Notes under the pieces: generated by a model
The model's input: only the letters and a program-made list of their open reading frames with translations
Told to the model about the DNA's origin: nothing
Databases searched by the model: none
Program-made: the position numbers and the translations under genes
DNA from: Piromyces finnis finn
Lineage: Eukaryota > Fungi > Neocallimastigomycota
Direction: 5' to 3'
DNA: 28,836 nucleotides
NCBI GenBank assembly: GCA_002104945.1
Contig: MCFH01000137.1
Span: 1-28,836 of the forward strand
Part shown: one piece after another, positions 2,070 to 25,018 of the stretch
How positions within the stretch are numbered: position 1 is the stretch's first letter
Layout of the letters: the number at the start of each line of letters is the position of its first letter

Positions 2070-2207
2070 ATTTAATACATCTTCAATTGAAAGAGCAGCT
2101 GAAGTAAATTCTTTGGAAAGTTCATCTGTTGAAATATCAGGATCATTGAGTTTTGATGAAAGCATTTGGGATTTATTAGGACTGAGTATCGATTCCTTTT
2201 CCTCAAT
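2070..2207 (-). mobile_element. Fragment of LINE pol, right-arm mirror copy
   Basis: Reverse complement of 825-962; same peptide. Confidence 0.9.
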
Positions 2208-2432
2208 AAAAGTTTTAATTTAAAAATGATTCAAGAATTCTTTGAAAGGCCTATTAATAGAAAAAATTTAAGAAATGATTTATTTGATAGTTTAGAAGTT
2301 TCTAAAAATAGAAAAAGCATGAGAGGATTTTATAAATATCCTGTTCTTTATTTAAATTTTAAAGATGAAGAATCTAAAGATTACAAATACACTATTGAAC
2401 ATCTTAAACCCAAATTAACTGAAAAAAAATGA
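2208..2432 (+). pseudogene. Remnant of AAA-ATPase-like domain (PF09820-type) gene; mirrored at about 600-824 on the minus strand
   Basis: KSFNLKMIQEFFE...DLFDSLEVSK...FYKYPVLYLNFKD resembles the family pattern GKSLNLSMLxxFF...LFxxLxIxK...KYPVIxLxFKD recalled from memory. The Walker A region is cut off by the antisense LINE fragment. Confidence 0.65.
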
Positions 2433-2469
2433 AAATTTAAGTCAAATTAAAAAATATAAAAATAGTATG

Positions 2470-2802
2470 TTAAATCGAATCATTAAAAGTAATATGAATA
2501 TGTTAAAATAGTGGATATGGCAGATATGATTTCGGATTTCCTATTGGAAAGTATTTTAATAATAAAGAAAAAAATATATTTTAATTAAAGTTAAGATTTT
2601 TAAAAAAAAATAAAAAAATACATGAAAAAATAAATTATGAAGAGGAAGAAAAAGAAGATAAGAATTTTTTATCAAAATCTGTCTTTTAAAGGAATGTGAA
2701 GATGCTATAAACCAAATTGAAGAAAAATCTAGAGCTAACGATTATAATAATTTTATTAAATATGGTATTGCCTTATATAAAAGAACATGGGATGTTAATT
2801 GA
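2470..2802 (+). pseudogene. Frameshifted C-terminal remnant of PD-(D/E)XK_9 (DUF1703/PF08011-type) nuclease domain; mirrored at about 209-560 on the minus strand
   Basis: Reads IIKSN...NSGYGRYDFGFP across frameshifts, then LKECEDAINQIEEK...FIKYGIALYKRTWDVN* (2686-2802). These match the recalled family motifs SNRESGYGRYD and ALxQIEEKxY...KYGIAF. Confidence 0.72.
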
Positions 2803-5426
2803 AAATAAATAATGGAGAAATACAAGACACATCAGTAACTAGTAATTGTGGAGGTAATAAAAAAGGAAGAAAAGAACTACTATAAAAAAACAAGAGTCAT
2901 AACAACAACAAGAGAAGCAGGAACAAGAAAAAGAATAAAAACGAGAATAGCATAGAACAGAGTAAATAATATCGAAAAAGAAGCAGGAAAAACATCAAGA
3001 ACAAAAAAAGGGGATAAAATAAAGTTAAATAGTTATAATTTGTTTATTTGTTTTATTTATAACCATGGTTTTTAAATTATTTTATTGTAGTATTAATTAT
3101 TCTCATGCATTGATAAATACTTCTGATATTATTTAATAAATGAAAGTTAAATATATTTATCACAACTACTTTAGGAAGATTTTTATTTTTATATCTAATA
3201 TTATGAGATAGTGATTTGAATTAGATGAATAAGAAAGTGATCATTTAAAAATATCGTGAGCTTTACTAATTTGTATTTCAATGTTTATTATTTCATCACT
3301 TCTTGTTATTACTTTTACATTTATCATAATAATATTTTCCACCCAGTTTAAATAAATCAATCATAAATTTTTTAAGACCTTTTTCTTCTGTAGTTTCAAT
3401 TATAATAATTAAAAAATTTGTGTCATTAACAAATGAAAATAAATCCGTTTAATTTATTCTTTTTCTAGGCATTCAGATAAAGCAATTGTAAAGCTTTTTA
3501 TAATCACATTTTTATTTCTTTAGACTATAAAAAACCTATTAAAAATTAATATATTTTATATTTTCATTTTTGAAGAATATAAAATATAAATTATAAAAAT
3601 AAGTAAATATATTTTTAGAGTAAAATTAGAGAGAGGATAGATTTTATAAAAATTGATATATAAACCTCCTTTTTTTTTAATTTTTTGTTTTTTTATATTT
3701 AATTTATACGTGATGTATCTAGATTTCTTTCCACAATATTAAAAAAAATAAGAATCTAAATAAAATAACATAACTATAAAAAAATATTTCTAGTATATAT
3801 GTTTAATCTTTATAATAAAAATAAAAATGCTTTTTTTTTTTTTCTAATTCATAGTTTATAAAACTAATGGTGGAAATAAATCCGCTTAAATTTCATTTTT
3901 ATTTTTAAAAAAAATAAATATAAAAATAAAATAATAGATTAAACATAGGTTAAATATTTTTTATATAAAAATAATAAATTATTATTTAGTTAACTACTTC
4001 GCAAGTTATTACTTGTTTCTTAATATAAACTAATTATTCTTTTTAAATATTTATATTTATAATTTTATTATTAAATTTTAATAATGTCTTTATTTTTGTT
4101 ATATAATTTTGCTTATTCAACTACCTTTTTTTAAATTTTAAATATTATTTCTATATAATAAGTATAAGTTGTATATTTGTATATTATTTTATGGTACTTG
4201 TATATATTTTGATTATTGAAAGAAAATAATAAACTAGGCATAGAATAGGATTCTATTGAAAGATTACTATATAGAATTTGTCGAGAATGAAAAGGACTTT
4301 ATTTTTAATAAATTTAAACATATATGTAAATATAGATTAATACCAATTGCATATTAAAAGAAATTATATATATTAAATAATATTAAAGACACAAAATTGT
4401 TGAATGATAATGACTAGATAATTATCCTATAAATATATTAAAATTAATACCTGAAAAAAATAACAACATTGAAAATTTTGAAAATAATTTGAATAAAGAA
4501 AACAAAAAAAGAAAAAATAACAAGGTTTCTTGAAAGGGAAATTTACATGTTTCATATTATATATTATAAAGAAAATTGAATGAATGACGTAAAATATTAA
4601 AAATATAAAAAATTAATTGAGAATTTTAACATGAAAATATACGTTAATGTAGATTTTTTTTGTGATAAATAACGAATATATGGTGATATAATAAAAATAA
4701 AAATGTTGAAGATTCGGATAATTATCATAATTATTAAATGCTGTCATGGTAGTATAAGAATTACAAAAAGTAGAAATTATGTTCTATGAAAGAGATACCT
4801 GATGCCTATGATAATATTATTTGTAAAACTATTACTATGTTTTAATTTTTCAGGTGATCAAATATTAATTAGATTCACATCATGTATTACTTTCTTTACC
4901 TAACCAATATCTATTAATTTCCAATTGCTTGATTTGACACTATATGAAAATGATTTATATCCCTTCATATAAATATGAAAAAGCGATGAAGAATCAAGAA
5001 AAACTAATATACACAATGAATATTTTTAATCAAACATAAAATATAAAGTTTTACAACAAATATAAGTAATTGACGGAAGTTATTCAGTTTCAAAATTTGA
5101 AATTCTATATGAATTTGACTGTTAAAAAAGTATTAAAATAATAGATATAGATTTTATTTTCTATTATCAACAAAAAAACACATAAATGTCAATTGAATCA
5201 AATAAATTAAATAGTAGAACTACTTTATATGAAAATGCAACAAATAATAATCCAATTAGAAGATTAATTATATGATAAAAAATATAGGTGATAGCAAATG
5301 TAGTTATAGTAAATATATGGATATGAGTTTTAAAGAAAAAACAATAGAATGAAATTGAGTATTTAGAAAAATTAGTAGTAGAAGATTTTATACCTTAAAA
5401 GTAATATATGTTTAAATTATAAATTA

Positions 5427-8777: not shown

Positions 8778-8814
8778 TCATTTATTGTCATTATTATTAT
8801 TATTATTATTATTG

Positions 8815-8855
<41 letters not shown>

Positions 8856-11800
8856 GCTATCTCTACTGTTATCAACATCTTCATTATTATTGATAGGACT
8901 ATCGGAATTACGTTGATTGAAAAAATTTAATAGTTGGACTATGTAATCATAATATTTAATACGGATATCTCTAAATGTTGGACAATCTAATAACCAATGT
9001 TTAATATTTTGATCTCCACTCTTGCAACATGGACAGTAGTTAGGACAAACTGGATCAACGAATTTAGCGGTTTTTGCAACTCTAGCATCCAACTTGTATC
9101 CGCTTCTTGCTTTCAAAAGCCAGTAGAAACCATAGACAAACTCTGGGTACTCATAGCATAATTTAATAAAGTCTTTAGTTTCAATAAATTTATTATCGTC
9201 ATAGTATTGAGCTTTGATTGATTTTCCTTTGAGATCTTTCCAATAAAAGTTTTTAACTGCTTTAACATCTCCATGCTTCTTTAATTTTTTATCAAGTGTC
9301 CTACTTGATTTGCACCATGTATATTTTCTAAATTTAGGAATGTACTTGACAAGGTGTGAAATAATACAATTTGAGCTTTTCCACTTGTTAAAACATCTAA
9401 CCTGAGCTAATGCGCATTTGGCTGACAATGGAGGAATACCCAAATCTTTTGAAATAGAATATAGAGATATAAACGATACAGCTTTATGAACTCCTGCAAC
9501 CCACCGTATTCCTTTGTTAACATGCTTCTGAGCAATTCTAGACCTAGCTTTATTGGATCCAAGTAATGGTGCAAAGTATGAAACTCTGCTGATCACTTGT
9601 GAGTTAAGTACTAGCTTTTTGAAAGGAATAGGAATATTAGGGTTTCTTAAGAATTTACTGACTGAAAAAAGTCCTTTCAAAACCTTATTATTAAGAGCTT
9701 TAATAACTGGTTTAAGAGACAAATTCTTATCAAATGGAACACCAAGATAAGTGTAGCAATCAGTAGTTGGAATGGGTTGTCCTGCCAAGTAGAATGTTGG
9801 ATCTCTCTTGTTCTGATTTTCAACTGATTCAGGACGAATCACCATCGTTGAACATTTTTGGATACCAAATTCCATTTCATTATACATCGCCCATTCGTTA
9901 ACTTTTTTAAGCAACTTTTTTAAGCAGCATCTTGTAGGAGCACAAATAACTATATCATCTGCAAATAGTCCACCGCAGCATCGAATGCCTCCTAAACTGA
10001 CTCCAAGATCTTCGCACCCTTTAAAAATATCATTAATAAAGAGATTAAAGAGAATTGGAGAAAGTGGGCAACCTTGACGGACTCCTTTCTTCACATCAAA
10101 AGATTTCGAGAATTGTCCATCTAATTTGACATTAGCCTTAGATGTTAGATATAATTTTTTTATGAACTGTAAACTCTTACCTCTAATTCCTAAACAATCT
10201 AATTTATGTAGGATATTACCGATTGGGACTGAATCGTATGCTTTCCTAAGATCTAAAAAGGCCAAATATGTCTCTTTATTATCTAATTGACGTCTACGAC
10301 ATATTTCTTGGATTGAAATGAAAAAACTGATACTCTCTTCCTTTTTTCGAAAACCAAATTGTTCCGGTCTAATGAAATTGTTCTTAAGACCATATTCTGA
10401 AATTCTAGTGGTGACAATTTTGGAAATCAACTTAATACCATTATTGATAAGCGATATACCACGGTAGTTATCACAGTCTGTCAAATCACCCTTCTTCGGA
10501 ATAGAAACAATACTGGATTCATTCCATGAGTTGGGGAAGTCTCCATCCCAAATACGGTTGAATAATTTATGAATAAATTTTAAACCATGAGCATTATTAT
10601 CGGTAGTGGCATTACCAGAAGAATTATTATCAGTAGCATTATTAGAATCATTACTTGAAGGAATTAATGCTTTGAAAAATTCAATAGGAATACCATCCGG
10701 TCCTGATGCTTTATAATTTGGAGTAGAGAGGATAGCTGACTTGACTTCATCAATACTAATATCTTGATTGATATCCCATTCTTCAAGCATAGGGAGTGAA
10801 AAACGCTTATTCGTTGGTTCTTCATACCATTGCTCCAAGTCAAGACTTGCACCACTTGGATCAGATGCAAGATTTTCGAAATGATCATGCCATACCTCTA
10901 GTTGTTCTTCCGTAGCAACAACTAAATCTCCATTTTTATTTTTAATAGGCTGAGCAGTAAAGAAAGTATCTTTTCCGATTTTCGCAGTTTTCTTGATCCA
11001 TTTCCAAGCTTTCTTAGGATTATGACTCTTCATATACTCACAACCTGTTTTAATCCAATGAGGATATTCTTGTTTCCTGTACTCATTACATTTTTTATGA
11101 ATGTAGTTAATGAGCTTATTATAAATTTCAATCCTTTTAATCAATTCATCTATATCATAAATTCTTTCTTTTTTTAATTTCCTATACAGCTTCATTTTGA
11201 TTTTCTGAAGATTAAAAATTTGTTGTGAAATATGAAATGAAAATTTTATAATATTATTTACAGAAGTAATACTGAGCTCGTCTGCAATTGAAAAAGCAGT
11301 TGAAGTAAACTCTTTGGAGAGTTCATCTGTCGAAAAATTAGAATCGTTGAGTTTTGCTGAAAGTATTTGGAATTTATTGTGACTGAGAATAGATTCCTTT
11401 TCCTCAATACATTTTAATCTATTCCATTTCAGAATTTTCTTAGGAACACTAAAGTCATTAGAAAAATCATCCATAGGAATAACTTTACCATTAATAAGGA
11501 GTGGCTTATGATCTGAAACAGGATAAAAATCATTTATGAATGATCCTGAGTGAATAAGATCTTTCATCTTCGAGTTGATAAGAGCGTGATCAATGTCGGA
11601 AGATTGATCACCCCGAGTCCAAGAGATAGAAGAACCTTTGAGAGGAAGAACTTCCCAATCTCCTAATCCATTAGATGATAACCAGTTGGATAATTTTACT
11701 TTAGACATATTAAAATCACCAACAAGAATCGATGGATGAGATGAGTGAGTTTGTAACCACAAGCGAACTTCTAACTTTGCATGATCTACATAGATGTTGT

Positions 11801-12284
11801 GATGTCTATGAGGCATATAAACATTCCCAATCGAGCATTTGAATTTATTCCAAAGGCTAAAAGTATAAATAGAGATAATATACTTACCTAAGAAGTTTTC
11901 AAGTGAGGCTTGACACGAATTGTGAATACCTAAATATAAACCTCTCATTCCAGGAACTGATTCATCAGCTTTCTTGAAAAAGTGTCTATAATTTCGTAAA
12001 GTAACACAACAAGGATACTCTGTATTCGATCCAGAACCATTACCAGTTTCTTGAAAGCATAAAAATAATGGTTTAAAAATAGCTGTGAAATAGCTAATGC
12101 TATCTCTCTTCTCATGATTCCACCCATTGGTATTCCAACTAAGACAGAAAGAAAAATTATCGGGCTTGTTGGATGAGCAAGAATCGTTGCTATAACTATT
12201 ATTATTATTATTGTCATCGTTATTAATGGATGATGTGTCAGAGGAATTAGATGACCTATTATCAGATGCGGTGTAATTGATGAA
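8778..12284 (-). CDS. LINE pol reading frame (APE-RT-zinc finger), open for 1169 codons; extends upstream of the called Met at 11948
   Basis: APE motifs WNTNG (12123-12137) and CFQET (12045-12059) lie upstream of the called start in the same frame, followed by GDFN, SDIDH and SDH. RT motifs: KASGPDGIP, YRGISL, QFGFR, FLDLRKAYDSV, GVRQGCPLSPILFNL, LFADD, YTYLG. Zinc finger: CPCC-x8-H-x4-C. The frame is closed upstream by TAG at 12285-12287. Confidence 0.93.
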
Positions 12285-12853
12285 CTATCGACTACTGAAT
12301 TGTTATCGGAGTTAATAGAACTATCAGAATTAATTGTTGAATGATGAGGTTGAAATTGTGATTGTTGTAGATCTGGAGTATATTCATGTTGGAGATCTTG
12401 TTGAAGATCTGAACGTTGATGAGATTGTTGAGATGATTGTTGAGTTGATTGTTGAATTGTTTGTTGAATTGATTGTTGTTGTTTATTGGAAACTAAAAAT
12501 TTACGTTTGAGTGAAGAAAAAGTGTATTTGTGATTCCTTCTACTACGAGCTGAAAAGGAAATTTTGACAGTTGAAAGTTTCTTTCTTAAGATGTGTAAAA
12601 TATTATAACAGTCTTTCACTGAACCATGAACCTTGACTAAGAAAAAGTGATCATTGAAATTCTTCAAATATTTAACACTAATAACTGAATTAAAATTGTC
12701 CTTCAGAATAACCTCGAGTTTTTCCCATAGTTTGCTAACTGACCATGATCGAATACCACGGATAAAGAAGGATCTAATATTATCTAAGGGGATACCATAA
12801 GAGCGGGTACCACGTCTGATATAATTCTTATCTTTGATATAAAGGACGGACAT
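11945..12853 (-). CDS. LINE ORF1-like (possible RRM-like N-terminus, Gln/Ser-rich linker); the part downstream of about 12270 is probably an out-of-frame shadow of pol
   Basis: Directly upstream of pol on the same strand; basic/aromatic N-terminal ~115 aa and QQS/QQT 4-aa repeats. The C-terminal ~105 codons overlap the APE-coding frame. Confidence 0.65.
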   Translation of the reverse strand: MSVLYIKDKNYIRRGTRSYGIPLDNIRSFFIRGIRSWSVSKLWEKLEVILKDNFNSVISVKYLKNFNDHFFLVKVHGSVKDCYNILHILRKKLSTVKISFSARSRRNHKYTFSSLKRKFLVSNKQQQSIQQTIQQSTQQSSQQSHQRSDLQQDLQHEYTPDLQQSQFQPHHSTINSDSSINSDNNSVVDSSSITPHLIIGHLIPLTHHPLITMTIIIIIVIATILAHPTSPIIFLSVLVGIPMGGIMRREIALAISQLFLNHYFYAFKKLVMVLDRIQSILVVLLYEIIDTFSRKLMNQFLE

Positions 12854-14836: not shown

Positions 14837-15689
14837 TATATTATTTTATTCCTTTTTATTTTTTTTTATTTTTATTTTCTTTACTTTTTTTAATTTATTC
14901 AAGTTATATTTTCAACTTTATTTTTTTATTTTATTTTATAATTATTATAACGACGACTAAAACAATAATTATAAAGTTTTAAATAAAAGAAAATTATTTG
15001 GTGGATTTTCTTTTTTCTTTTATATGTATTTGTATATTTCTTTGATACATCACTAATATAATAAGAAATATATGAATCCCATATATTAAAATATATACTA
15101 TACATTTTAAAATATATTAAAATATATAATTAAAAATAAATTTAATATAACTTCGGAAACGTAGTACAAATTCATAAATTAAAAAAGTTTTGTTAACAAA
15201 AACTTTAATTCTTAATAAACCAAAATTAAATTGATAACTTAAATTAATATATTGTTTTTTGGAATTAATATGTAATAACTTATAAAGTATAATATAATAG
15301 ATAATATAATTATCTATATTATCTATAATGATTTCCATGTTGTTGGTAAAGGAATAAAGAAAGGAAGTTTTAATGTATGATTCTATAAAGCACAGTAAAA
15401 AATGAGCAACATGTAATAAAATTTTTATTTATAACCTATTGAGCTTACATATTAACTAACCCTGGAAATAAATAAATAAAGCGAAACATGATAAAATATA
15501 TATATTTGTTTATAATAAAAAATAAAATTTTCTTTTCTATATCGTTAGGTAGATTCAATTTTTTATTCAACAAAAATTTTTATCCATTTTTCATTTTATT
15601 TTTTAAAAAAATATAATAATTATATAAACTTTAATTTATATAAATATTTTATTTTAATATATATATTTAATAAAATTATATTAAATTCT

Positions 15690-15895
15690 TGTTAGAATAT
15701 GTGAAACGTTATGTCACATGTATTCAAATGTATTGAAATGTATTAAAACGTATTTGTATATATTGTATTTGATTATATGTTTAAGCCACAATGTAAATGT
15801 ATAAATACATGTAGTTTGAGAAGAATGTAACGTAAGTAGTTCTTTATCATAAAATATATTAATAAAGTTGACATAATTATAAACAACTCTTAATA
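15690..15895 (+). repeat. 5' LTR (206 bp)
   Basis: TGTTAGAATA...CTCTTAATA, with AATAAA at 15861. Differs from the 3' LTR by one substitution and an 11-bp deletion (CTAAATTAAAC). Confidence 0.93.
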
Positions 15896-15907
15896 GATTA
15901 AGAGTCT
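15896..15907 (+). other. Degenerate primer-binding site
   Basis: GATTAAGAGTCT directly after the LTR; 8/12 match to GGTTATGAGCCC, the half-tRNA-iMet type PBS known from copia-group elements. Confidence 0.5.
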
Positions 15908-16619
15908 CATTGACTCTCAAGAGAGAATCTCAATGCCTCTTAAAAGGATTCTTAGAAATGGAATAAGAGTGCTGGACACTAAATTATGACAAAGGAGAAA
16001 ACAGTAGGAAATTCTAACCATTACAATTAAATTATTTAATCTGAAATTATCTATGTTTGGTAAAATTGTTTTGAGATCTAGAATTTGAGATTTCAAAATT
16101 TTGAAATTGAAATGGCAATCTAAAATAGAAAAACATTACCTGATATAAACAAAGTTTCCTTATACTAAAATAATATAGACAATTTTAAATTCCGAAAGCA
16201 AATTATTCTAAAATTGAATTTTAAATTTTTTTAACTTTTAATTTAAATCTTTAAATTTAAAAATAAACAAAACAAATTGAACTCTAAATAATTTTGAACC
16301 AACATAAAATTTATTTTATTCAAATACAACCAACGCCTAAAACTCAGAAATAAATTAAAGTATTCAAAATTGAAAAGAATTAATTATTTTAGAAACTATT
16401 TATGAATAAATATTGTAAAATTAAATTCAAAGTTAATAAAGTACAAATTCGAAATATAAATTTAGAATTAAATAAACAATAGAATTTCATTCTCAGTTTA
16501 CTTTATTCACTACAAACAGTATAAATTAACTAGTGAACTCTAAATTTATTTTATATAATTATTTACAATTGAGTTATTAAATTTCATCAAATATATTAAT
16601 ATTATAAATACTCCAAAGA

Positions 16620-17822
16620 ATGAGATTAAGAAGCAAAGTAATATATTTTTTAAATATTTTTTCGACAATTTTAATTCTACCATTGGTAATTGCTGAAAAT
16701 CAAAAATGTCATGTAACCAATGTCGGAACAGGTGTTTGCGTTAGAGAGGATCAATGTAAATTAAATGATAAACAAACTGGCAATGCTAAAGCATATGCAG
16801 GTTTTTGTACACATGACTCAGTTAATATTAAGTGCTGTATAAAAAATGTCAATACACTTACAGATGGAACAATTCTTCCAAGTACAGGAAAATGTAAAAA
16901 TATAAATGAAAATGGCTGTTCAGAAGAATCTTACACGAGATATTTAAACCAATGCCCAGGAGAGAGTGTTGTTCAACTATGTGTTCCAAATACAAATCTA
17001 AATAATGATCAATTAAAAGTAAGTGACAATATAATTAACATAATCAAAGGTTTTGAAGGATGTGTATTAACTGCCTATTTAGATCCGGTTGGAGTATGGA
17101 CTATTGGTTACGGTACTACCAGTGCTAACTCTGATATTACTGGAACATATATCAACGAGGGCTTAACAATAGATGAAAAAACTGCAGAGAAATGGTTAAA
17201 ACTTTCAATCGAAAAAAAATATGGTCCTAATGTAAAATCTTTCAATTATAAATATAATTGGAATCAAAATGAATATGATGCATTATGTAGTTTTGCTTAT
17301 AATGTTGGAAGTATTGATGGATTAACTAATAATGGTCGGAGAACAAAGGAAGAAATTAATAAAAAGATTTTAGAATACAACAAAGGATATGTAAACGGTG
17401 TTTTAAAACCTCTTCCAGGATTAGTAAGAAGAAGAGCAGCTGAGGCTGCACTATTTGCAGGTTGTGACTATTCAACCTATATCAATTTTGGTAAAACATA
17501 TACTAAAATTGGTATAGAAATTTGTGATCATATTGGTGAATTTTATATTAAAAAGTTATGCGATCTTGGTTATAAAGTTGACATTAGTAAAGTCAGTATA
17601 TCCAAAATACCAATTATCTCTAACAATACCGATATAACTAATATTTCTAATGACATTAATATAGTTGATAGTGAATCTTGTGGTTATTATATTGTTGATA
17701 ACCAACTTAATGACGAACAAGAAGATTCAAACGGAACTGTAAACTTCAAATATATTTCTCTCGCAAATGTATTTATTATTTTAATGTCAGTAATGTTTTG
17801 GAAAATAAACATTGTATATTAG
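16620..17822 (+). CDS. Secreted, probably surface-anchored GH24 (phage-type) lysozyme: signal peptide, Cys-rich N-terminal repeats, GH24 domain (17019-17456), hydrophobic C-terminal tail
   Basis: Catalytic E-x8-D-x5-T (E146, D155, T161 in FEGCVLTAYLDPVGVWTIGYG), NQNEYDALCSFAYNVG and GLVRRRAAEAALF are GH24 signatures. 400 aa, intronless; C-terminus ISLANVFIILMSVMFW is hydrophobic (TM or GPI signal). Confidence 0.93.
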   Translation: MRLRSKVIYFLNIFSTILILPLVIAENQKCHVTNVGTGVCVREDQCKLNDKQTGNAKAYAGFCTHDSVNIKCCIKNVNTLTDGTILPSTGKCKNINENGCSEESYTRYLNQCPGESVVQLCVPNTNLNNDQLKVSDNIINIIKGFEGCVLTAYLDPVGVWTIGYGTTSANSDITGTYINEGLTIDEKTAEKWLKLSIEKKYGPNVKSFNYKYNWNQNEYDALCSFAYNVGSIDGLTNNGRRTKEEINKKILEYNKGYVNGVLKPLPGLVRRRAAEAALFAGCDYSTYINFGKTYTKIGIEICDHIGEFYIKKLCDLGYKVDISKVSISKIPIISNNTDITNISNDINIVDSESCGYYIVDNQLNDEQEDSNGTVNFKYISLANVFIILMSVMFWKINIVY

Positions 17823-18412
17823 AATTCTCCTAATTTACTCAATTTATTAAATTTATTAATTTGATTTTGATCTACTCACTATGTCAATTTACATTCATCA
17901 TCATTTAAAAATCCATATATTCAATTATGTAAATATTCATAAACATACAATCAACGTTTCCACAAACATTCATTTTATTTTTAAAAGAACTAGTTTTATT
18001 AACATTCATAAAATAGCATTATTGTTATTGAAAGCATAGCATACATATTTATTTCAAGTAAATAAATTGTTTGTGAAATATTCAAATACTTTAACTACTA
18101 CTATTTTAATGAGAAAATATTCTTTCCGCCATAGAGGAAAGATAGAACATAAAGAAAATACATAAAATTTATACAATTAGAAACATGAATTAGAATAATT
18201 AAACATTATTTGATAAGTTTATATAAAATATCCTATTACAATGAAATTATACAAAAAGAATTGAACTATCCTTGTGAAAATGTCAAACAACCTCTTCATG
18301 ATAATATCACTCAAAATTAGTATATATTATTTAATCCAGTATACAACTCTTTGAATTGATTTACTATAACAACACATTAAGATAATATATTTAGCCTCAA
18401 AAGCATTATTAA

Positions 18413-18504
18413 AGTTATTGCTAATCTACAAAGCAAATATATTTCTGGTCAAATGCTCATCCCGTAGGCAATTATTAGTTATTGCTAATCTACAAAGCAA
18501 ATAT
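18413..18504. repeat. Two exact 28-bp direct repeats (AGTTATTGCTAATCTACAAAGCAAATAT) separated by 36 bp
   Basis: Copies at 18413-18440 and 18477-18504; each has an internal TTGCT/AGCAA inverted repeat. Confidence 0.9.
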
Positions 18505-18539
18505 TTTAAATGAGGTAATTTATTAAAGTTAGAAATGCT

Positions 18540-18650
18540 TAGCGTGAAATGAGCATATTCTACACATATATATTTAGAATGACCTAGCGTGAAATGGGTG
18601 CATTCAATAATATTTTAACAACTTATCATGATTTAACTTAGCGTGAAATG
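18540..18650. repeat. TAGCGTGAAATG x3 with unrelated spacers
   Basis: Exact 12-mers at 18540, 18585 and 18639. Confidence 0.9.
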
Positions 18651-19752
18651 AGTTATATTCATAGATAATTATTAATGATGGTTTTAGACCTATATATATT
18701 TAATTTGGCCCCATCAATAACAATGTAGCACCTTCATAGTAAGGGCTCCTTAGATTTAGATGACATTGATTCATCATATTTATTTATTACCAACATTCAA
18801 GAATGTTGTGACGCCGTTTTAAAATATAATTTACGGTGATTTAGTAACCTCATATATAAATCGCCACTTTCAACGTAGTGAGTGATCGCCGACCAATTAG
18901 CTGACATTCTAATTAACCGAGCCGACTTCGATATAATTTAGAAGAACTTTATTCTCTTCAACAATCGATATTTTAAATGTCATTATCTTACAATATTAAC
19001 TTGTTATAATTTTACTGGTATATCTACTTATTTTAATTTGAAGTAAAGAAATACATAATTGAGGAATATTTTATTCATTAGTTTGATATTCTATGATTAT
19101 CACTACATTAAAATATATTATCATGAAAATATTATTTCACTATATTTTAAAGGATAAGCAATTGAGAAAAATGAATGAAAACATTAGAATATGTTATTTA
19201 TTATTTATATAGGTATTAATACTTATCGTATATGTTATGGAAAATTATTCATTATTATGAAAATTTGATGCAAAATGAATGAAATTTTATGAAATTTAAA
19301 TTTCTCATTTTCAAATCTAAATATTTATTACTAAACATCTAGATTTGAGGGGGAAGTAGTGAATATACGAAATTTAAAATTCAAGATAATAATTTTTGTT
19401 TCTAGTTAAACATTGGAAATAACTAAAACATTGCATAGAAACTAAGGCTTAATAAATAGAATGAATTGAAATTCAAATTGTAAAAATTTATAAGATTCAA
19501 TATTCAATATGTAAAAATGAAAAGAACAAAATTTCAAATACAAAGTAAAATATTCTTAAATATTATAAGAATAATTAATCAATACAAAAGGCATAAAAGG
19601 AAGGAAAAACACCTAAAAGAAAATGTTAAAATTCAATATACATAAACTAAATAACTATTAAGAATTTAATTAAAATTTTACCATTATTAATTAGTATTTA
19701 CAAATAGATTGAAATACAATTATGCTAATATTCTAAAGAAAATTGTAATTAT

Positions 19753-20050
19753 AAGGACATAAAACCAGAGAGTTATCCATAGGTTGTCCGAAGAACGTAA
19801 AACCAAGAAGATTAACCATAGGTTGTTAAGAGAACGTAAAACCAAAAAGAGTTATCCATATGTGTTGTCATAAGGACGTAAAATCAAAGGTTAACCATGA
19901 GTTGTTAAGAAAACGTAAAACCAAAGAGGTAAACCATGCGTTGTCATAAGGACGTAAAATCAAAGAGATAAACCATGTGTTGTCTATAATTCTGTGTAAA
20001 TCTCAGAGAGATTACCAATATAGTTTATAGGATAATGTAAAACCGGAAGG
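19753..20050. repeat. Degenerate tandem array of ~36-43-bp units (consensus about AAGGACGTAAAACCAAAGAGGTTAACCATGTGTTGTCAT), 6 clear plus ~2 decayed copies
   Basis: Recurring CGTAAAA(C/T)CA and CCAT...GTTGT cores, located in the 3' internal region of the LTR element. Confidence 0.9.
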
Positions 20051-20346
20051 GTTTTCAATCCTTAATGGATGGTATAACAATTTATGAATATCCAATCCAA
20101 ATTTTAAACTTTAATACTACCCAATTATACAAAGGTTTTCAGTTTATCCATAAAAACGAAGTTATAGGGTAATATTTAAATTCTTTAAAGCAATTAGCGA
20201 ATAATATATGTGAAATATTTTAAATTCCAATTAATGAAATATAAAAATTTTAAACATTAGATTTAGTTTATAGTTAATAGTTTAGAAATAATAAAATGCA
20301 CATATTCACCAGCAAACCAAATTTTACTTAGTAGAAAATTAGGTTT

Positions 20347-20355
20347 GAGGGGGAA
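20347..20355 (+). other. Polypurine tract
   Basis: GAGGGGGAA immediately before the TG of the 3' LTR. Confidence 0.9.
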
Positions 20356-20572
20356 TGTTAGAATATGTGAAACGTTATGTCACATGTATTCAAATGTATT
20401 GAAATGTATTAAAACGTATTTGTATATATTGTATTTGATTATATGTTTAAGCCACAATGTAAATGTAAAAATACATGTAGTTTGAGAAGAATGTAACGTA
20501 AGTAGTTCTTTATCATAAAATATATTAATAAAGTTGACATAATTATAAACCTAAATTAAACAACTCTTAATA
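20356..20572 (+). repeat. 3' LTR (217 bp)
   Basis: TGTTAGAATA...CTCTTAATA followed by the TSD ATTCT. Confidence 0.93.
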
Positions 20573-20586
20573 ATTCTATTAATATT

Positions 20587-20753
20587 ATTAGAATATGTGA
20601 AATATATGACTCTTGTATTAAGAAATATATTAAAACGTATTGTATTTGATTAAATATTTAAGCCACAATGTAAATGAATAAATACATGTAGTTTGAATAG
20701 AAAGTTAACTATATTATCATAATTATAAAACCTAAATTAAACCACTCCTAATA
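20587..20753 (+). mobile_element. Older, diverged solo LTR of the same family (~167 bp)
   Basis: TATTAGAATATGTGAAA...TTAAGCCACAATGTAAATG..AAATACATGTAGTTTGA...CCTAAATTAAACCACTCCTAATA aligns to the young LTRs with many substitutions and deletions; no TSD. Confidence 0.85.
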
Positions 20754-20893
20754 TAGAAATTTCTTTTTCTCTGAAACATAACACAAATAATGAGTCATTT
20801 TAGAATATGATCATAAAAAAAAAATGTATCATCTTATATATAATTTTATATCCTCTTATATAATCCAATAATCCAATAATATAATAATTATAA

Positions 20894-21849: not shown

Positions 21850-22779
21850 TTAAAGACATTGAGAGTAATAATCATTAACAAATACACATTTTGAGCCTGA
21901 TTGGCAACATGTAGGACCATTAAATCCTATACCACCACATTGTCCCCATTTAGTAGCACAATTTTGATTAGTAGTAGTAGTAGTTGAAGTTGAAGTTACT
22001 TTTACAGTTTCGGTAATAGTAACAGTATCAATTTCAGTGATAGTCACCTTAACTGTAGAACATTGATTTATAATTGTTTTAGTAGTAGTAGTAGTTGGAA
22101 TAGTTTTAGTTGAAGTAGTAGTAGTAGTTGGAATAGTTTTAGTTGAAGTAGTAGTAGTAGTTGGAATAGTTTTAGTTGAAGTAGTAGTAGTAGTAGTAGT
22201 AGTTGGAATAGTTTTGGTTAAAATAGTGGTAGTAGTAGTAGTTGGAATAGTTTTAGTTGAAGTAGTAGTAGTAGTAGTAGTTGGAATAGTTTTAGTTGAA
22301 GTAGTAGTAGTAGTAGTAGTTGGAATAGTTTTAGTTAAAGTAGTGGTAGTAATTGAAATATTAGAATTTGAAAAGAGTGGTAGAGGTCTAGTAGCAATGA
22401 TTTCTGCAGTACTTGTTGCAAGAGTTATGGAGGAAGTAGTGGAAAGCTTTGATTTAGTAAAAATTGGTATTGTTCTAAGGGTAGGAAGGGCAGTTGTTGT
22501 AGTTTTTGTTATTCCAGAATAATCACAGTAATAAGTATCGTAACAATATTCATGTCTTAATGTCCAAACACCACCTACTCGAATACATTCTTCCTTATAT
22601 CCAGGTAAAGGTGTTACAGGAGTTCGACCTTCACAAAATTTTTCTTTTTCAGAAGGATCAGTTGGTTGACCTGGTATAGTTTTAGTGGCACTTACAATGG
22701 TATTTTCAGAATTAGAAGCATTAATAAAAGTTAAAGCTGTCAAAAAGACAACATAAAATAATAATTGAGATGTTTTCAT
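21850..22779 (-). CDS. Secreted non-catalytic CBM1 protein (signal peptide, small 4-Cys domain, Thr-rich repeats, C-terminal CBM1)
   Basis: C-terminal [36 protein letters not shown] is a canonical CBM1; ([12 protein letters not shown])n linker; no glycoside hydrolase motif seen. Confidence 0.92.
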
Positions 22780-24112: not shown

Positions 24113-25018
24113 TTAAATACATTGAGAGTAGGATGAACTGTATTCATGACAGGTAGAACCTTGTTCACAACAGGTTGGACCAGAATAACCAGTACCACCA
24201 CATTGAGCCCATTTCTTAGCACAATTTTCTTGTGGTTGGCTTGTTGGTTCAGATGAATTAACAGTAATAGTAACTCTTTCAGTAACAGTAACCTTTACCT
24301 TTTCAGTGAGAGTTACAGTAACTGGTGTGCAGTTAGAATCTGATGGATTAACCTTGGTTGTAGTGGTTGGGATAACCTTGGTTGAAGTGGTAGTGGTTGG
24401 AATTACCTTGGTTGAAGTAGTAGTGGTTGGGATAACCTTGGTTGAAGTAGTAGTGGTTGGGATAACCTTGGTTGAAGTGGTAGTGGTTGGGATAACCTTG
24501 GTTGAAGTAGTAGTGGTTGGGATAACCTTAGTGGAAGTGGTAGTGGTTGGGATAACCTTGGTTGAAGTGGTAGTGGTTAGGATAACCTTGGTTGAAGTGG
24601 TAGTAGTTGGGATAACCTTAGTGGAAGAACTTATTCTATTATTAGTGGTATATACTGGTAATGCTTTAGTAAAGGTTCTTGTATCGAGTCCACAATAACA
24701 CCATTTGCTATTTTCAATACTCCATTCACCATATTTATCTCTAATGTAAATAGTGTCACAAGTATTTTTATCTTTACAATAGTTTGTGTCTTCAGGTAAA
24801 GGTACAACTGTTGCAGAAGCAGTCTTAGTAGTTGTAATAACTACAGTTTTCATTGTAGTAGTAACAGTTTTTTTAGTTATTGATGAGTTTGATGGAATTT
24901 TTGGAGGAAGACTTGTTTGTTTTGATATATATTCATAGGAAGGGTTCAAATAAGTAGTTGTTTGAGCATTAGAAAGAGCTCCTAATAAACCAACTAAAAG
25001 AAAATTATATAATTTCAT
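24113..25018 (-). CDS. Secreted non-catalytic protein with a dockerin-like (CBM10-type) motif, (TTTSTKVIP)n linker and C-terminal CBM1
   Basis: CBM1: CAKKWAQCGGTGYSGPTCCEQGSTCHEYSSSYSQCI. CKDKNTCDTIYIRDKYGEWSIENSKWC resembles the second half of a fungal dockerin (C..v.y.D..G.WgvEn..WC). Signal peptide MKLYNFLLVGLLGALSNA. Confidence 0.88.
   Translation of the reverse strand: MKLYNFLLVGLLGALSNAQTTTYLNPSYEYISKQTSLPPKIPSNSSITKKTVTTTMKTVVITTTKTASATVVPLPEDTNYCKDKNTCDTIYIRDKYGEWSIENSKWCYCGLDTRTFTKALPVYTTNNRISSSTKVIPTTTTSTKVILTTTTSTKVIPTTTTSTKVIPTTTTSTKVIPTTTTSTKVIPTTTTSTKVIPTTTTSTKVIPTTTTSTKVIPTTTTKVNPSDSNCTPVTVTLTEKVKVTVTERVTITVNSSEPTSQPQENCAKKWAQCGGTGYSGPTCCEQGSTCHEYSSSYSQCI

Follow-up and report, generated by a model that had tools for sequence, protein, structure and literature searches.

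Non-autonomous long terminal repeat retrotransposons of the anaerobic fungus Piromyces finnis as probable carriers of exchangeable gene cassettes, among them a lysozyme

Introduction

Retrotransposons with long terminal repeats (LTRs) that lack the genes for their own replication, and the occasional capture of gene fragments by elements of this kind, are already known. In plants, the LARD/Dasheng, BARE-2 and TRIM elements combine LTRs, a primer-binding site (PBS), a polypurine tract (PPT) and a target-site duplication (TSD) with the absence of gag-pol and with mobilisation in trans, and LARDs and other plant non-autonomous LTR elements occur as many young copies and solo LTRs, with a conserved non-coding block in the interior. 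In acutely transforming retroviruses (v-onc) a captured, spliced cellular gene replaces gag-pol in the sense orientation, propagation depends on a helper, and co-packaged RNAs recombine. The maize element Bs1 is a non-autonomous LTR element that carries intronless host gene sequence in the sense orientation, made up of fragments of three genes with no full-length open reading frame (ORF) among them, and both the capture and the shuffling seen in gene-transducing LTR elements have been explained by aberrant template switching (PMC13317346). Features of each of these systems recur in an LTR element that we describe here from Piromyces finnis, an early-diverging anaerobic fungus, in which it carries an intact gene for a GH24 lysozyme. 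The stretch of DNA analysed, called the window below, comprises 28,836 nt of contig MCFH01000137.1 (assembly GCA_002104945.1), and coordinates without a contig or locus name refer to it.

Anatomy of the element

The element occupies positions 15690-20572 (4,883 bp) and was delimited by a direct-repeat search that returned a 195-bp exact-register repeat, 15690-15884 against 20356-20550, at 99% identity. An original prediction, made from the letters of the window, had described a pair of LTRs of 206 and 217 bp with one substitution and one 11-bp indel between them, a perfect 5-bp TSD, a PPT abutting the 3' LTR and an intact, intronless, sense-oriented lysozyme gene of 400 codons in an element devoid of gag or pol reading frames; all of this held on re-reading. 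The parts of the element are as follows.

15685-15689, no strand: 5' TSD, ATTCT, read directly and the same as 20573-20577
15690-15895, plus: 5' LTR of 206 bp, TGTTAG...CTCTTAATA, placed by the direct-repeat search, by reading its ends and by comparison with other LTRs
15800-15807, plus: TATAAATA box in the 5' LTR
15861-15866, plus: AATAAA in the 5' LTR
15896-15909, plus: 14-nt PBS, GATTAAGAGTCTCA, without a spacer to the LTR and exactly complementary to nt 27-40 of tRNA-Lys(CUU)
15896-16113, plus: backbone leader (element positions 207-424), common to all cargo classes and homologous to a Neocallimastix locus
16114-16619, plus: upstream region that moves with the cassette, found in the protein-cargo classes and missing from the seryl-tRNA synthetase (SerRS) class
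16455, 16520 and 16603: TATAAA, candidate internal promoter
16620-17822, plus: cargo gene, 400 aa, intronless, sense
17853-20355, plus: non-coding 3' backbone block, 90-100% identical across 21/21 elements
19347-19355, plus: second, internal polypurine core, GAGGGGGAA, present in every copy
19753-19984, plus: tandem array of about six 39-bp repeats within the 3' block, the copy number of which differs among elements
20341-20355, plus: PPT, AGGTTTGAGGGGGAA, ending in GAGGGGGAA and abutting the 3' LTR, identical in 21/21 elements
20356-20572, plus: 3' LTR of 217 bp
20573-20577, no strand: 3' TSD, ATTCT, read directly

Comparison with 40 other LTRs gave 217 bp as the standard length, and the 5' LTR of the window copy therefore carries an 11-bp deletion; the missing 11 bp lay between short repeats. 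The sole substitution between the two LTRs turns the family TATAAATA box into TAAAAATA in the 3' LTR (20466 region). Apart from the cargo gene the element has no sense-strand ORF of at least 60 aa, the only further frame of that size being one of 68 aa that lies antisense over the 5' LTR, and Pfam matched no family in the ten longest stretches of the 3' interior that are free of stops. An Rfam scan of the element was likewise without a match. The window as a whole is AT-rich (GC 0.13-0.35). The internal GAGGGGGAA copy at 19347-19355 is a possible central PPT.

A family multiplied without replication genes

It is clear that this element is one of many. A conserved 21-mer of the LTR occurs 77 times in the genome and not once in a reversed control, and these copies resolve into about 26 same-strand pairs and about 23 unpaired LTRs on many contigs. 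The members of a pair lie 2.3-5.25 kb apart and none lie 5.5-8 kb apart, and gag-pol would therefore not fit into any element of this LTR family. Twenty full elements were retrieved (L031-L050), which together with the window copy makes 21 that were compared. In 20/20 of the retrieved elements the LTR pair shows 0-4 mismatches, PBS and PPT are the same throughout, and no ORF of at least 70 aa accompanies the cargo. Perfect 5-bp TSDs flank 20/20 full elements and 11/11 solo LTRs of the first set of loci (31/31 insertions), and those of the full elements differ from site to site except for TAAAC, found at two loci. Elements bearing the lysozyme occupy six genomic sites with six different TSDs, the tally by which the original prediction had proposed to gauge its claim that the lysozyme travels as cargo of a retrotransposing unit; with six independent sites and no copy that includes gag-pol, that claim is supported. 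Chance, assembly duplication and segmental duplication are ruled out by the roughly 26 LTR pairs and their site-specific perfect TSDs. A retrotransposon family without replication genes has thus multiplied about 26-fold in P. finnis, carrying its cargo with it, and it shows the defining features of LTR retrotransposons, except for the CA terminus, together with those of a LARD-like non-autonomous element.

Several further observations concern the distribution of the family. Two full elements and a tandem LTR-LTR arrangement lie within 12 kb at C24:900987-912199, and three LTRs lie within 1 kb at C200:350171-351203, which suggests nested or tandem insertions. The solo LTRs L004 (C203) and L015 (C81) are on different contigs with identical flanks and the same TAAAT TSD, and these contigs therefore probably duplicate one locus as haplotigs or through assembly redundancy. 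In L031 (C200:519500-527000) the 3' block is interrupted by an insertion of about 570 bp with a poly(A) end, flanked by duplicated TTGAGGGGGAA, which looks like retroposition of the short or long interspersed nuclear element type (SINE/LINE) into the internal polypurine copy. By coordinates, another LTR-like family of shorter elements is seen (C152:619544-623373, C208:151679-155186 and C80:17586-21412), which has in common with the first family the PBS as well as portions of leader and 3' end; two of its copies contain a 483-aa ORF, the start of which is 35-36% identical to the Cys-rich head module described below.

A constant backbone with an exchangeable slot

When the window element is mapped onto the others, two blocks are common to all, namely the LTR with the leader (element positions 1-424) and the 3' block (2164-4883). 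Between them lies a slot in which the following contents were found.

Class a, L041-L049, nine of the 20 retrieved elements: stop-ridden, colinear fragment of cytoplasmic SerRS
Class b, the window copy and L031-L035, six elements: lysozyme in two lineages (98% and 91% nucleotide identity to the window copy)
Class c, L036-L038, three elements: ORFs of 432-434 aa, the first ~135 and last ~40 residues as in the lysozyme cargo, the centre different
Class d, L039: 514-aa ORF with the class-c centre (domain X), a second domain (Y) and the common tail
Class e, L050: 196-aa ORF, no signal peptide
Class f, L040, an old truncated copy whose LTR is 84% identical: head module and Y-like domain, with a stop

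At least five types of cargo occupy the slot, and the lysozyme is one of them; the commonest is the dead SerRS fragment, which was recognised from Pfam pieces and from its match to residues 356-436 of PDB entry 3qne (E=1.8e-26). The cargos are all single ORFs in the sense orientation. About 500 bp upstream of the ATG are common to the protein classes, and the junction between cargo and 3' block falls at an identical sequence in every class. As in gene-transducing elements, the SerRS fragment is host-derived and the lysozyme gene is homologous to a gene of Neocallimastix.

The copies are also mosaics of one another. The window element passes back and forth between L032-type and L034-type sequence, with at least five switches along its length. 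Identity among all the cargo classes reaches 99-100% in the last 1 kb upstream of the 3' LTR, though the cargos are unrelated or 9% diverged. Within the cargos themselves head, centre and tail are found in several combinations. Such mosaicism would be expected if templates were switched among co-packaged RNAs; gene conversion is another possible source.

The cargo proteins

The lysozyme of the window matches PF00959 (Phage_lysozyme, GH24) with E=8.8e-26 over profile positions 1-125 of 125. A signal peptide (aa 1-26) and a Cys-rich module (aa 27-135) precede the GH24 domain (aa 143-275), and the C-terminus (aa about 366-400) is hydrophobic and resembles a glycosylphosphatidylinositol (GPI) signal. 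The E-8-D-5-T motif of T4-type lysozymes, which we take to be catalytic, is intact in the translation (FEGCVLTAYLDPVGVWT). The GH24 centre is 55-64% identical to bacterial or phage lysozymes with cell-wall-binding repeats, and a protein search identified a sister copy of the lysozyme as an annotated P. finnis protein. The cargo of the window is probably a secreted, GPI-anchored GH24 muramidase.

Pfam searches with the 432-, 434-, 514- and 196-aa cargos gave no match, and the class-c and class-d centres were approached through their homologues, about 300 for domains X and Y together in a full HMMER scan, and through predicted structure. The sequence of domain X matched nothing in Pfam or the PDB. 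Its AlphaFold2 model (predicted local distance difference test, pLDDT, 91) returned in Foldseek a top 14 made up entirely of the ColM family or the Bacteroides type VI secretion system (T6SS) effector BtpeA, with E values from 2e-4, and VIA gave Z scores of 5.6-8.0 against 11 ColM-family entries over 134-145 of 161 residues, the next unrelated entry scoring 3.6. Leads from Atlas to DUF3289 and DUF6402 scored below 0.9 and were not used. Domain Y itself had no Pfam match; 5/31 of its homologues match CHAP, its family profile finds the Trichomonas NlpC/P60 structure 6biq with E=0.002, and Cys46 and His122 are near-invariant, all of which suggests a CHAP/NlpC-P60-like domain. On these assignments the three identified centres (GH24, X and Y) point at peptidoglycan or, by fold, at lipid II, and the cargos may have an antibacterial role. 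For the 196-aa cargo there were weak papain-like, PPPDE, LRAT and TseH leads, none of which was adopted.

Most of the secreted cargos share a head of signal peptide and Cys-rich module. The model of the head module reached a pLDDT of 74 and found no match in the PDB; a word-indexed search with the module alone matched P. finnis proteins only, and weaker copies of it occur in further gene clusters of the genome (C184, C146 and C180). In the tail, which all of the secreted cargos share, a short polar segment leads into a hydrophobic C-terminus, and it looks like a GPI-anchor signal.

The primer site and the copia connection

The original prediction had taken the sequence next to the 5' LTR for a 12-nt PBS of the half-tRNA-iMet type. 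A site does abut the LTR directly; the 12-mer and its assignment to tRNA-iMet did not survive. A genomic search with the reverse complement of the PBS found a tRNA-Lys(CUU) gene (L051:1469-1542, minus strand), nt 27-40 of which, TGAGACTCTTAATC in the anticodon stem-loop, are the exact complement of the 14-nt PBS. The primer would then be the 5' part of tRNA-Lys(CUU), cut in the anticodon arm. Copia and Ty5 prime with an internal half-tRNA, which in their case comes from tRNA-iMet.

The PBS 14-mer occurs 166 times in the genome and is absent from the reversed control. Among the 100 listed of these 166 sites, about 38 are followed on their own strand, at a distance of 3-5 kb, by matches to RVT_2, the copia reverse transcriptase, when sites and matches are paired by their coordinates (for example C1:265023 with 269115, C124:56552 with 52113 and C46:868170 with 871284). 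In P. finnis the half-tRNA-Lys primer appears to serve copia elements of at least seven ORF size classes. The family thus has the Ty1/copia traits of a 5-bp TSD and of internal half-tRNA priming, in common with RVT_2-bearing elements, with tRNA-Lys rather than tRNA-iMet as the source. The family must receive Gag, protease, integrase and reverse transcriptase in trans, and the resident copia elements, with their identical primer site, are the likely helpers. A half-molecule of tRNA-Lys(CUU) as primer, common to this family and to those copia elements whose site could be paired with a reverse transcriptase match, is of interest for retroelement biology in its own right.

An explanation and its mechanism

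The explanation that we favour, with a probability of roughly 0.85, is that the element is one copy of a non-autonomous LTR family of the Ty1/copia type that acts as a carrier of gene cassettes. The backbone would contribute the signals needed in cis, which are the LTRs, the 14-nt primer site, a leader of ~220 nt, a 3' block of 2.5 kb and the PPT. Transcription would begin in the 5' LTR, perhaps directed by TATAAATA at 15800, and end past the AATAAA of the 3' LTR, and the RNA would be packaged in trans by copia Gag. It would be primed by the tRNA-Lys half and copied with the aid of the PPT, perhaps also of the internal copy at 19347, and the product would integrate with a 5-bp duplication, each round of retrotransposition placing the cargo at a new site. 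Template switching between co-packaged RNAs would shuffle both backbones and cargo domains, and selection would keep the protein cargos open. Six upstream ATGs are present in the leader, and TATAAA boxes are found 17-165 nt ahead of the cargo start codon; for these reasons the protein is more likely translated from an RNA that starts at an internal promoter than from one of full length.

Several observations count against this explanation or against parts of it. All LTRs compared (42/42) read TGTTAG...CTTAATA and so end in TG...TA, not in the canonical TG...CA, which is a variant and not disqualifying given the remaining LTR-retrotransposon features. The original prediction had looked to an autonomous copia counterpart with the same ends; the primer site is indeed shared with copia elements, and it alone is shared, since LTR, leader and 3' block showed no resemblance to any autonomous element when searched at the DNA level. 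Domain X has a conserved D-x-W-D-F that resembles the DxYD of colicin M, and no HR follows it; the catalytic motif of colicin M is, we take it, DxYDx5HR, and with the full motif not seen the domain is colicin-M-like by predicted fold only. Finally, the amino-acid changes between lysozyme lineages number 70, with 69 in the simulation described below, which is the neutral expectation. The NG86 dN/dS of 2-2.6 was rejected as a sign of positive selection, since it is inflated by AT bias and a simulation with the local spectrum reproduces the count of changes; the functional case rests on missing stops and frameshifts and not on dN/dS.

The Neocallimastix locus and the origin of the cassette

The GH24 lineage was detected in P. 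finnis only in the six LTR-borne copies, and its nearest fungal relative is a protein of Neocallimastix (N. californiae ORY32373.1; P0273 in a 658-aa form), 63% identical over 212 aa that include the region past the lysozyme domain. In that protein a signal peptide, a Cys module and GH24 are followed by two Cys modules, a chitin-binding domain (ChtBD1), NlpC/P60 and a similar tail. These relationships indicate that the lysozyme gene was taken from a fungal gene family and not directly from bacteria. Profiles of the P. finnis leader and 3' block match the Neocallimastix locus colinearly, the leader with E about 1e-16 and the 3' block, downstream of the gene, with E about 1e-27 and 7e-5; the same backbone profiles gave no matches in reversed sequence, in 20 dinucleotide shuffles or in the window flanks.

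How this homology is to be understood bears directly on what the backbone is. One alternative, which we consider unlikely, is that leader and 3' block once flanked a host gene and were captured with it, as a whole, by P. finnis LTRs, with the Neocallimastix locus as the ancestor that was never captured. It would account for the synteny of the locus in N. californiae, N. lanati and several metagenome contigs, between genes for CotH and CBM10 upstream and an Rce1-like gene downstream, and for the failure of the LTR profile to match there. It would have to accommodate, however, that the leader homology in Neocallimastix begins at a PBS-like GATTAAGAGTCT, at the exactly homologous position, and that in P. 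finnis unrelated cargos (the SerRS fragment and the 196-aa ORF) are set between just this leader and 3' block, which thus behave as backbone. The direct repeats of 225 bp, 88% identical, that bracket the whole Neocallimastix unit speak for both sides: they enclose it as LTRs would, but they are not adjacent to the PBS-like site and cannot be called LTRs because 743 bp separate the 5' repeat from that site. The sequence just upstream of the site has no downstream copy above shuffle level. Read most simply, the Neocallimastix gene is enclosed in an old member of this element lineage that has lost its mobility. Metagenome contigs that encode colicin-M-like or CHAP-like homologues (L060-L063) showed no backbone.

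Maintenance of the cargo

A second alternative, which we hold to be quite improbable, is that the cargo genes are neutral passengers, intact because the copies are young and without benefit to the fungus. The LTR pairs are indeed nearly identical, the amino-acid changes between the lysozyme lineages occur at the neutral expectation, and the backbone spreads well without a working gene, as the dead SerRS fragment, its commonest cargo, makes plain. Against it stands the condition of the reading frames. Between L032 and L034 the lysozyme ORF differs by 102 substitutions in 1203 nt (8.5%) and one 3-bp indel, with no stop, whereas the non-coding interior differs by 159 substitutions in 3199 nt (5.0%) and 20 indels, nearly all of them of lengths that would break a frame. 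When 102 substitutions were placed randomly in the ORF, with the spectrum taken from the non-coding part, 5.6 stops were expected, and no stop arose in 0.2% of trials (P = 0.002). The protein cargos of young copies are open in 11/11 cases and the old copy L040 has a stop, and a homologous gene is intact at a fixed locus in Neocallimastix. On a fair reading of these data the proteins change quickly in amino-acid sequence, yet their frames are protected. Sequencing runs whose type was guessed as RNA contain 0.66-0.68 of the words of the stretch, and one metatranscriptome contains 0.18.

The remaining doubt, raised along with the original prediction, was that the lysozyme inserted later into one resident element or that duplication, whether segmental or an error of assembly, gave rise to the LTR pair; no supporting point was found, and the idea is scarcely credible in view of six lysozyme copies with six TSDs, about 26 LTR pairs on many contigs, cassette junctions that are the same in all classes, a slot that holds other genes in sister copies, and no internal TSD or other boundary of its own around the lysozyme gene.

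Neighbouring features of the window

A diverged solo LTR of a related family (20588-20755, about 77-84% identical) begins 15 bp past the 3' TSD, and the element was therefore inserted beside the LTR of an older relative. A LINE-type retrotransposon lies at 8778-12853 on the minus strand, with a 1056-aa ORF that matches RVT_1 and, weakly, endonuclease and zf-RVT families; a 302-aa ORF precedes it, and its GC is above that of the surroundings. Also on the minus strand, at 21850-22779 and 24113-25018, are two paralogous ORFs of ~300 aa, each with a C-terminal fungal CBM1 cellulose-binding module and no Pfam match outside that module. An ABC ATPase is encoded in the window as well.

Significance and comparison with known systems

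The literature searched contained no paper on retroelement-borne lysozymes or colicin-M-like proteins in anaerobic fungi, and it also offered no account of a slot filled by several full-length, maintained genes that all seem aimed at the bacterial wall. Should the cargos be expressed, the family would represent a new eukaryotic route by which weapons against competing gut bacteria are multiplied and reshuffled. The family also ties bacterial enzyme domains gained by horizontal transfer to a means by which they could later spread through fungal genomes. The backbone also amounts to a minimal cis set (LTRs, leader of ~220 nt, 3' block and PPT) that moves a payload of 1-2 kb in fungi for which genetic tools are scarce. 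We suggest, tentatively, that the retroelement may be a working cassette platform of gut fungi, with a helper-dependent backbone of copia type that is old enough to occur in both Piromyces and Neocallimastix, which amplifies surface-anchored enzymes against peptidoglycan and lipid II and recombines their domains as a fast-evolving arsenal. One might perhaps think of such a platform as doing in eukaryotes, by way of RNA, what integrons or polymorphic-toxin loci do.

The closest likeness in the architecture of the proteins is to bacterial polymorphic toxins, bacteriocins and T6SS modules (colicin M, BtpeA, CHAP/NlpC-P60 amidases and GH24 muramidases), which have a constant head and tail around a swappable toxic centre; the P. 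finnis cargos reside in a eukaryote, have no immunity genes (none being needed), and are exchanged on a retroelement and not by DNA recombination at a toxin locus. The Neocallimastix GH24-ChtBD1-NlpC/P60 gene has in common with them the Cys-rich modules, the hydrophobic tail and the homologous leader and 3' block, and differs in being a single, fixed, syntenic locus without recognisable LTRs that encodes a longer protein with chitin-binding and NlpC/P60 domains. Compared with the transforming retroviruses, the element is non-infectious and without env, and its cargo is a secreted enzyme that is plausibly useful to the host. Bs1 is paralleled by the SerRS-fragment class, whereas the protein classes go beyond it with full-length genes, from signal peptide to anchor, that are present in several copies and exchanged domain by domain. 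The interiors of LARDs and their kin, finally, are non-coding or consist of decayed element genes, whereas the P. finnis family, in an early branch of the fungi and with an internal stretch of tRNA-Lys as its primer, has a defined slot for several kinds of intact, host-type gene.

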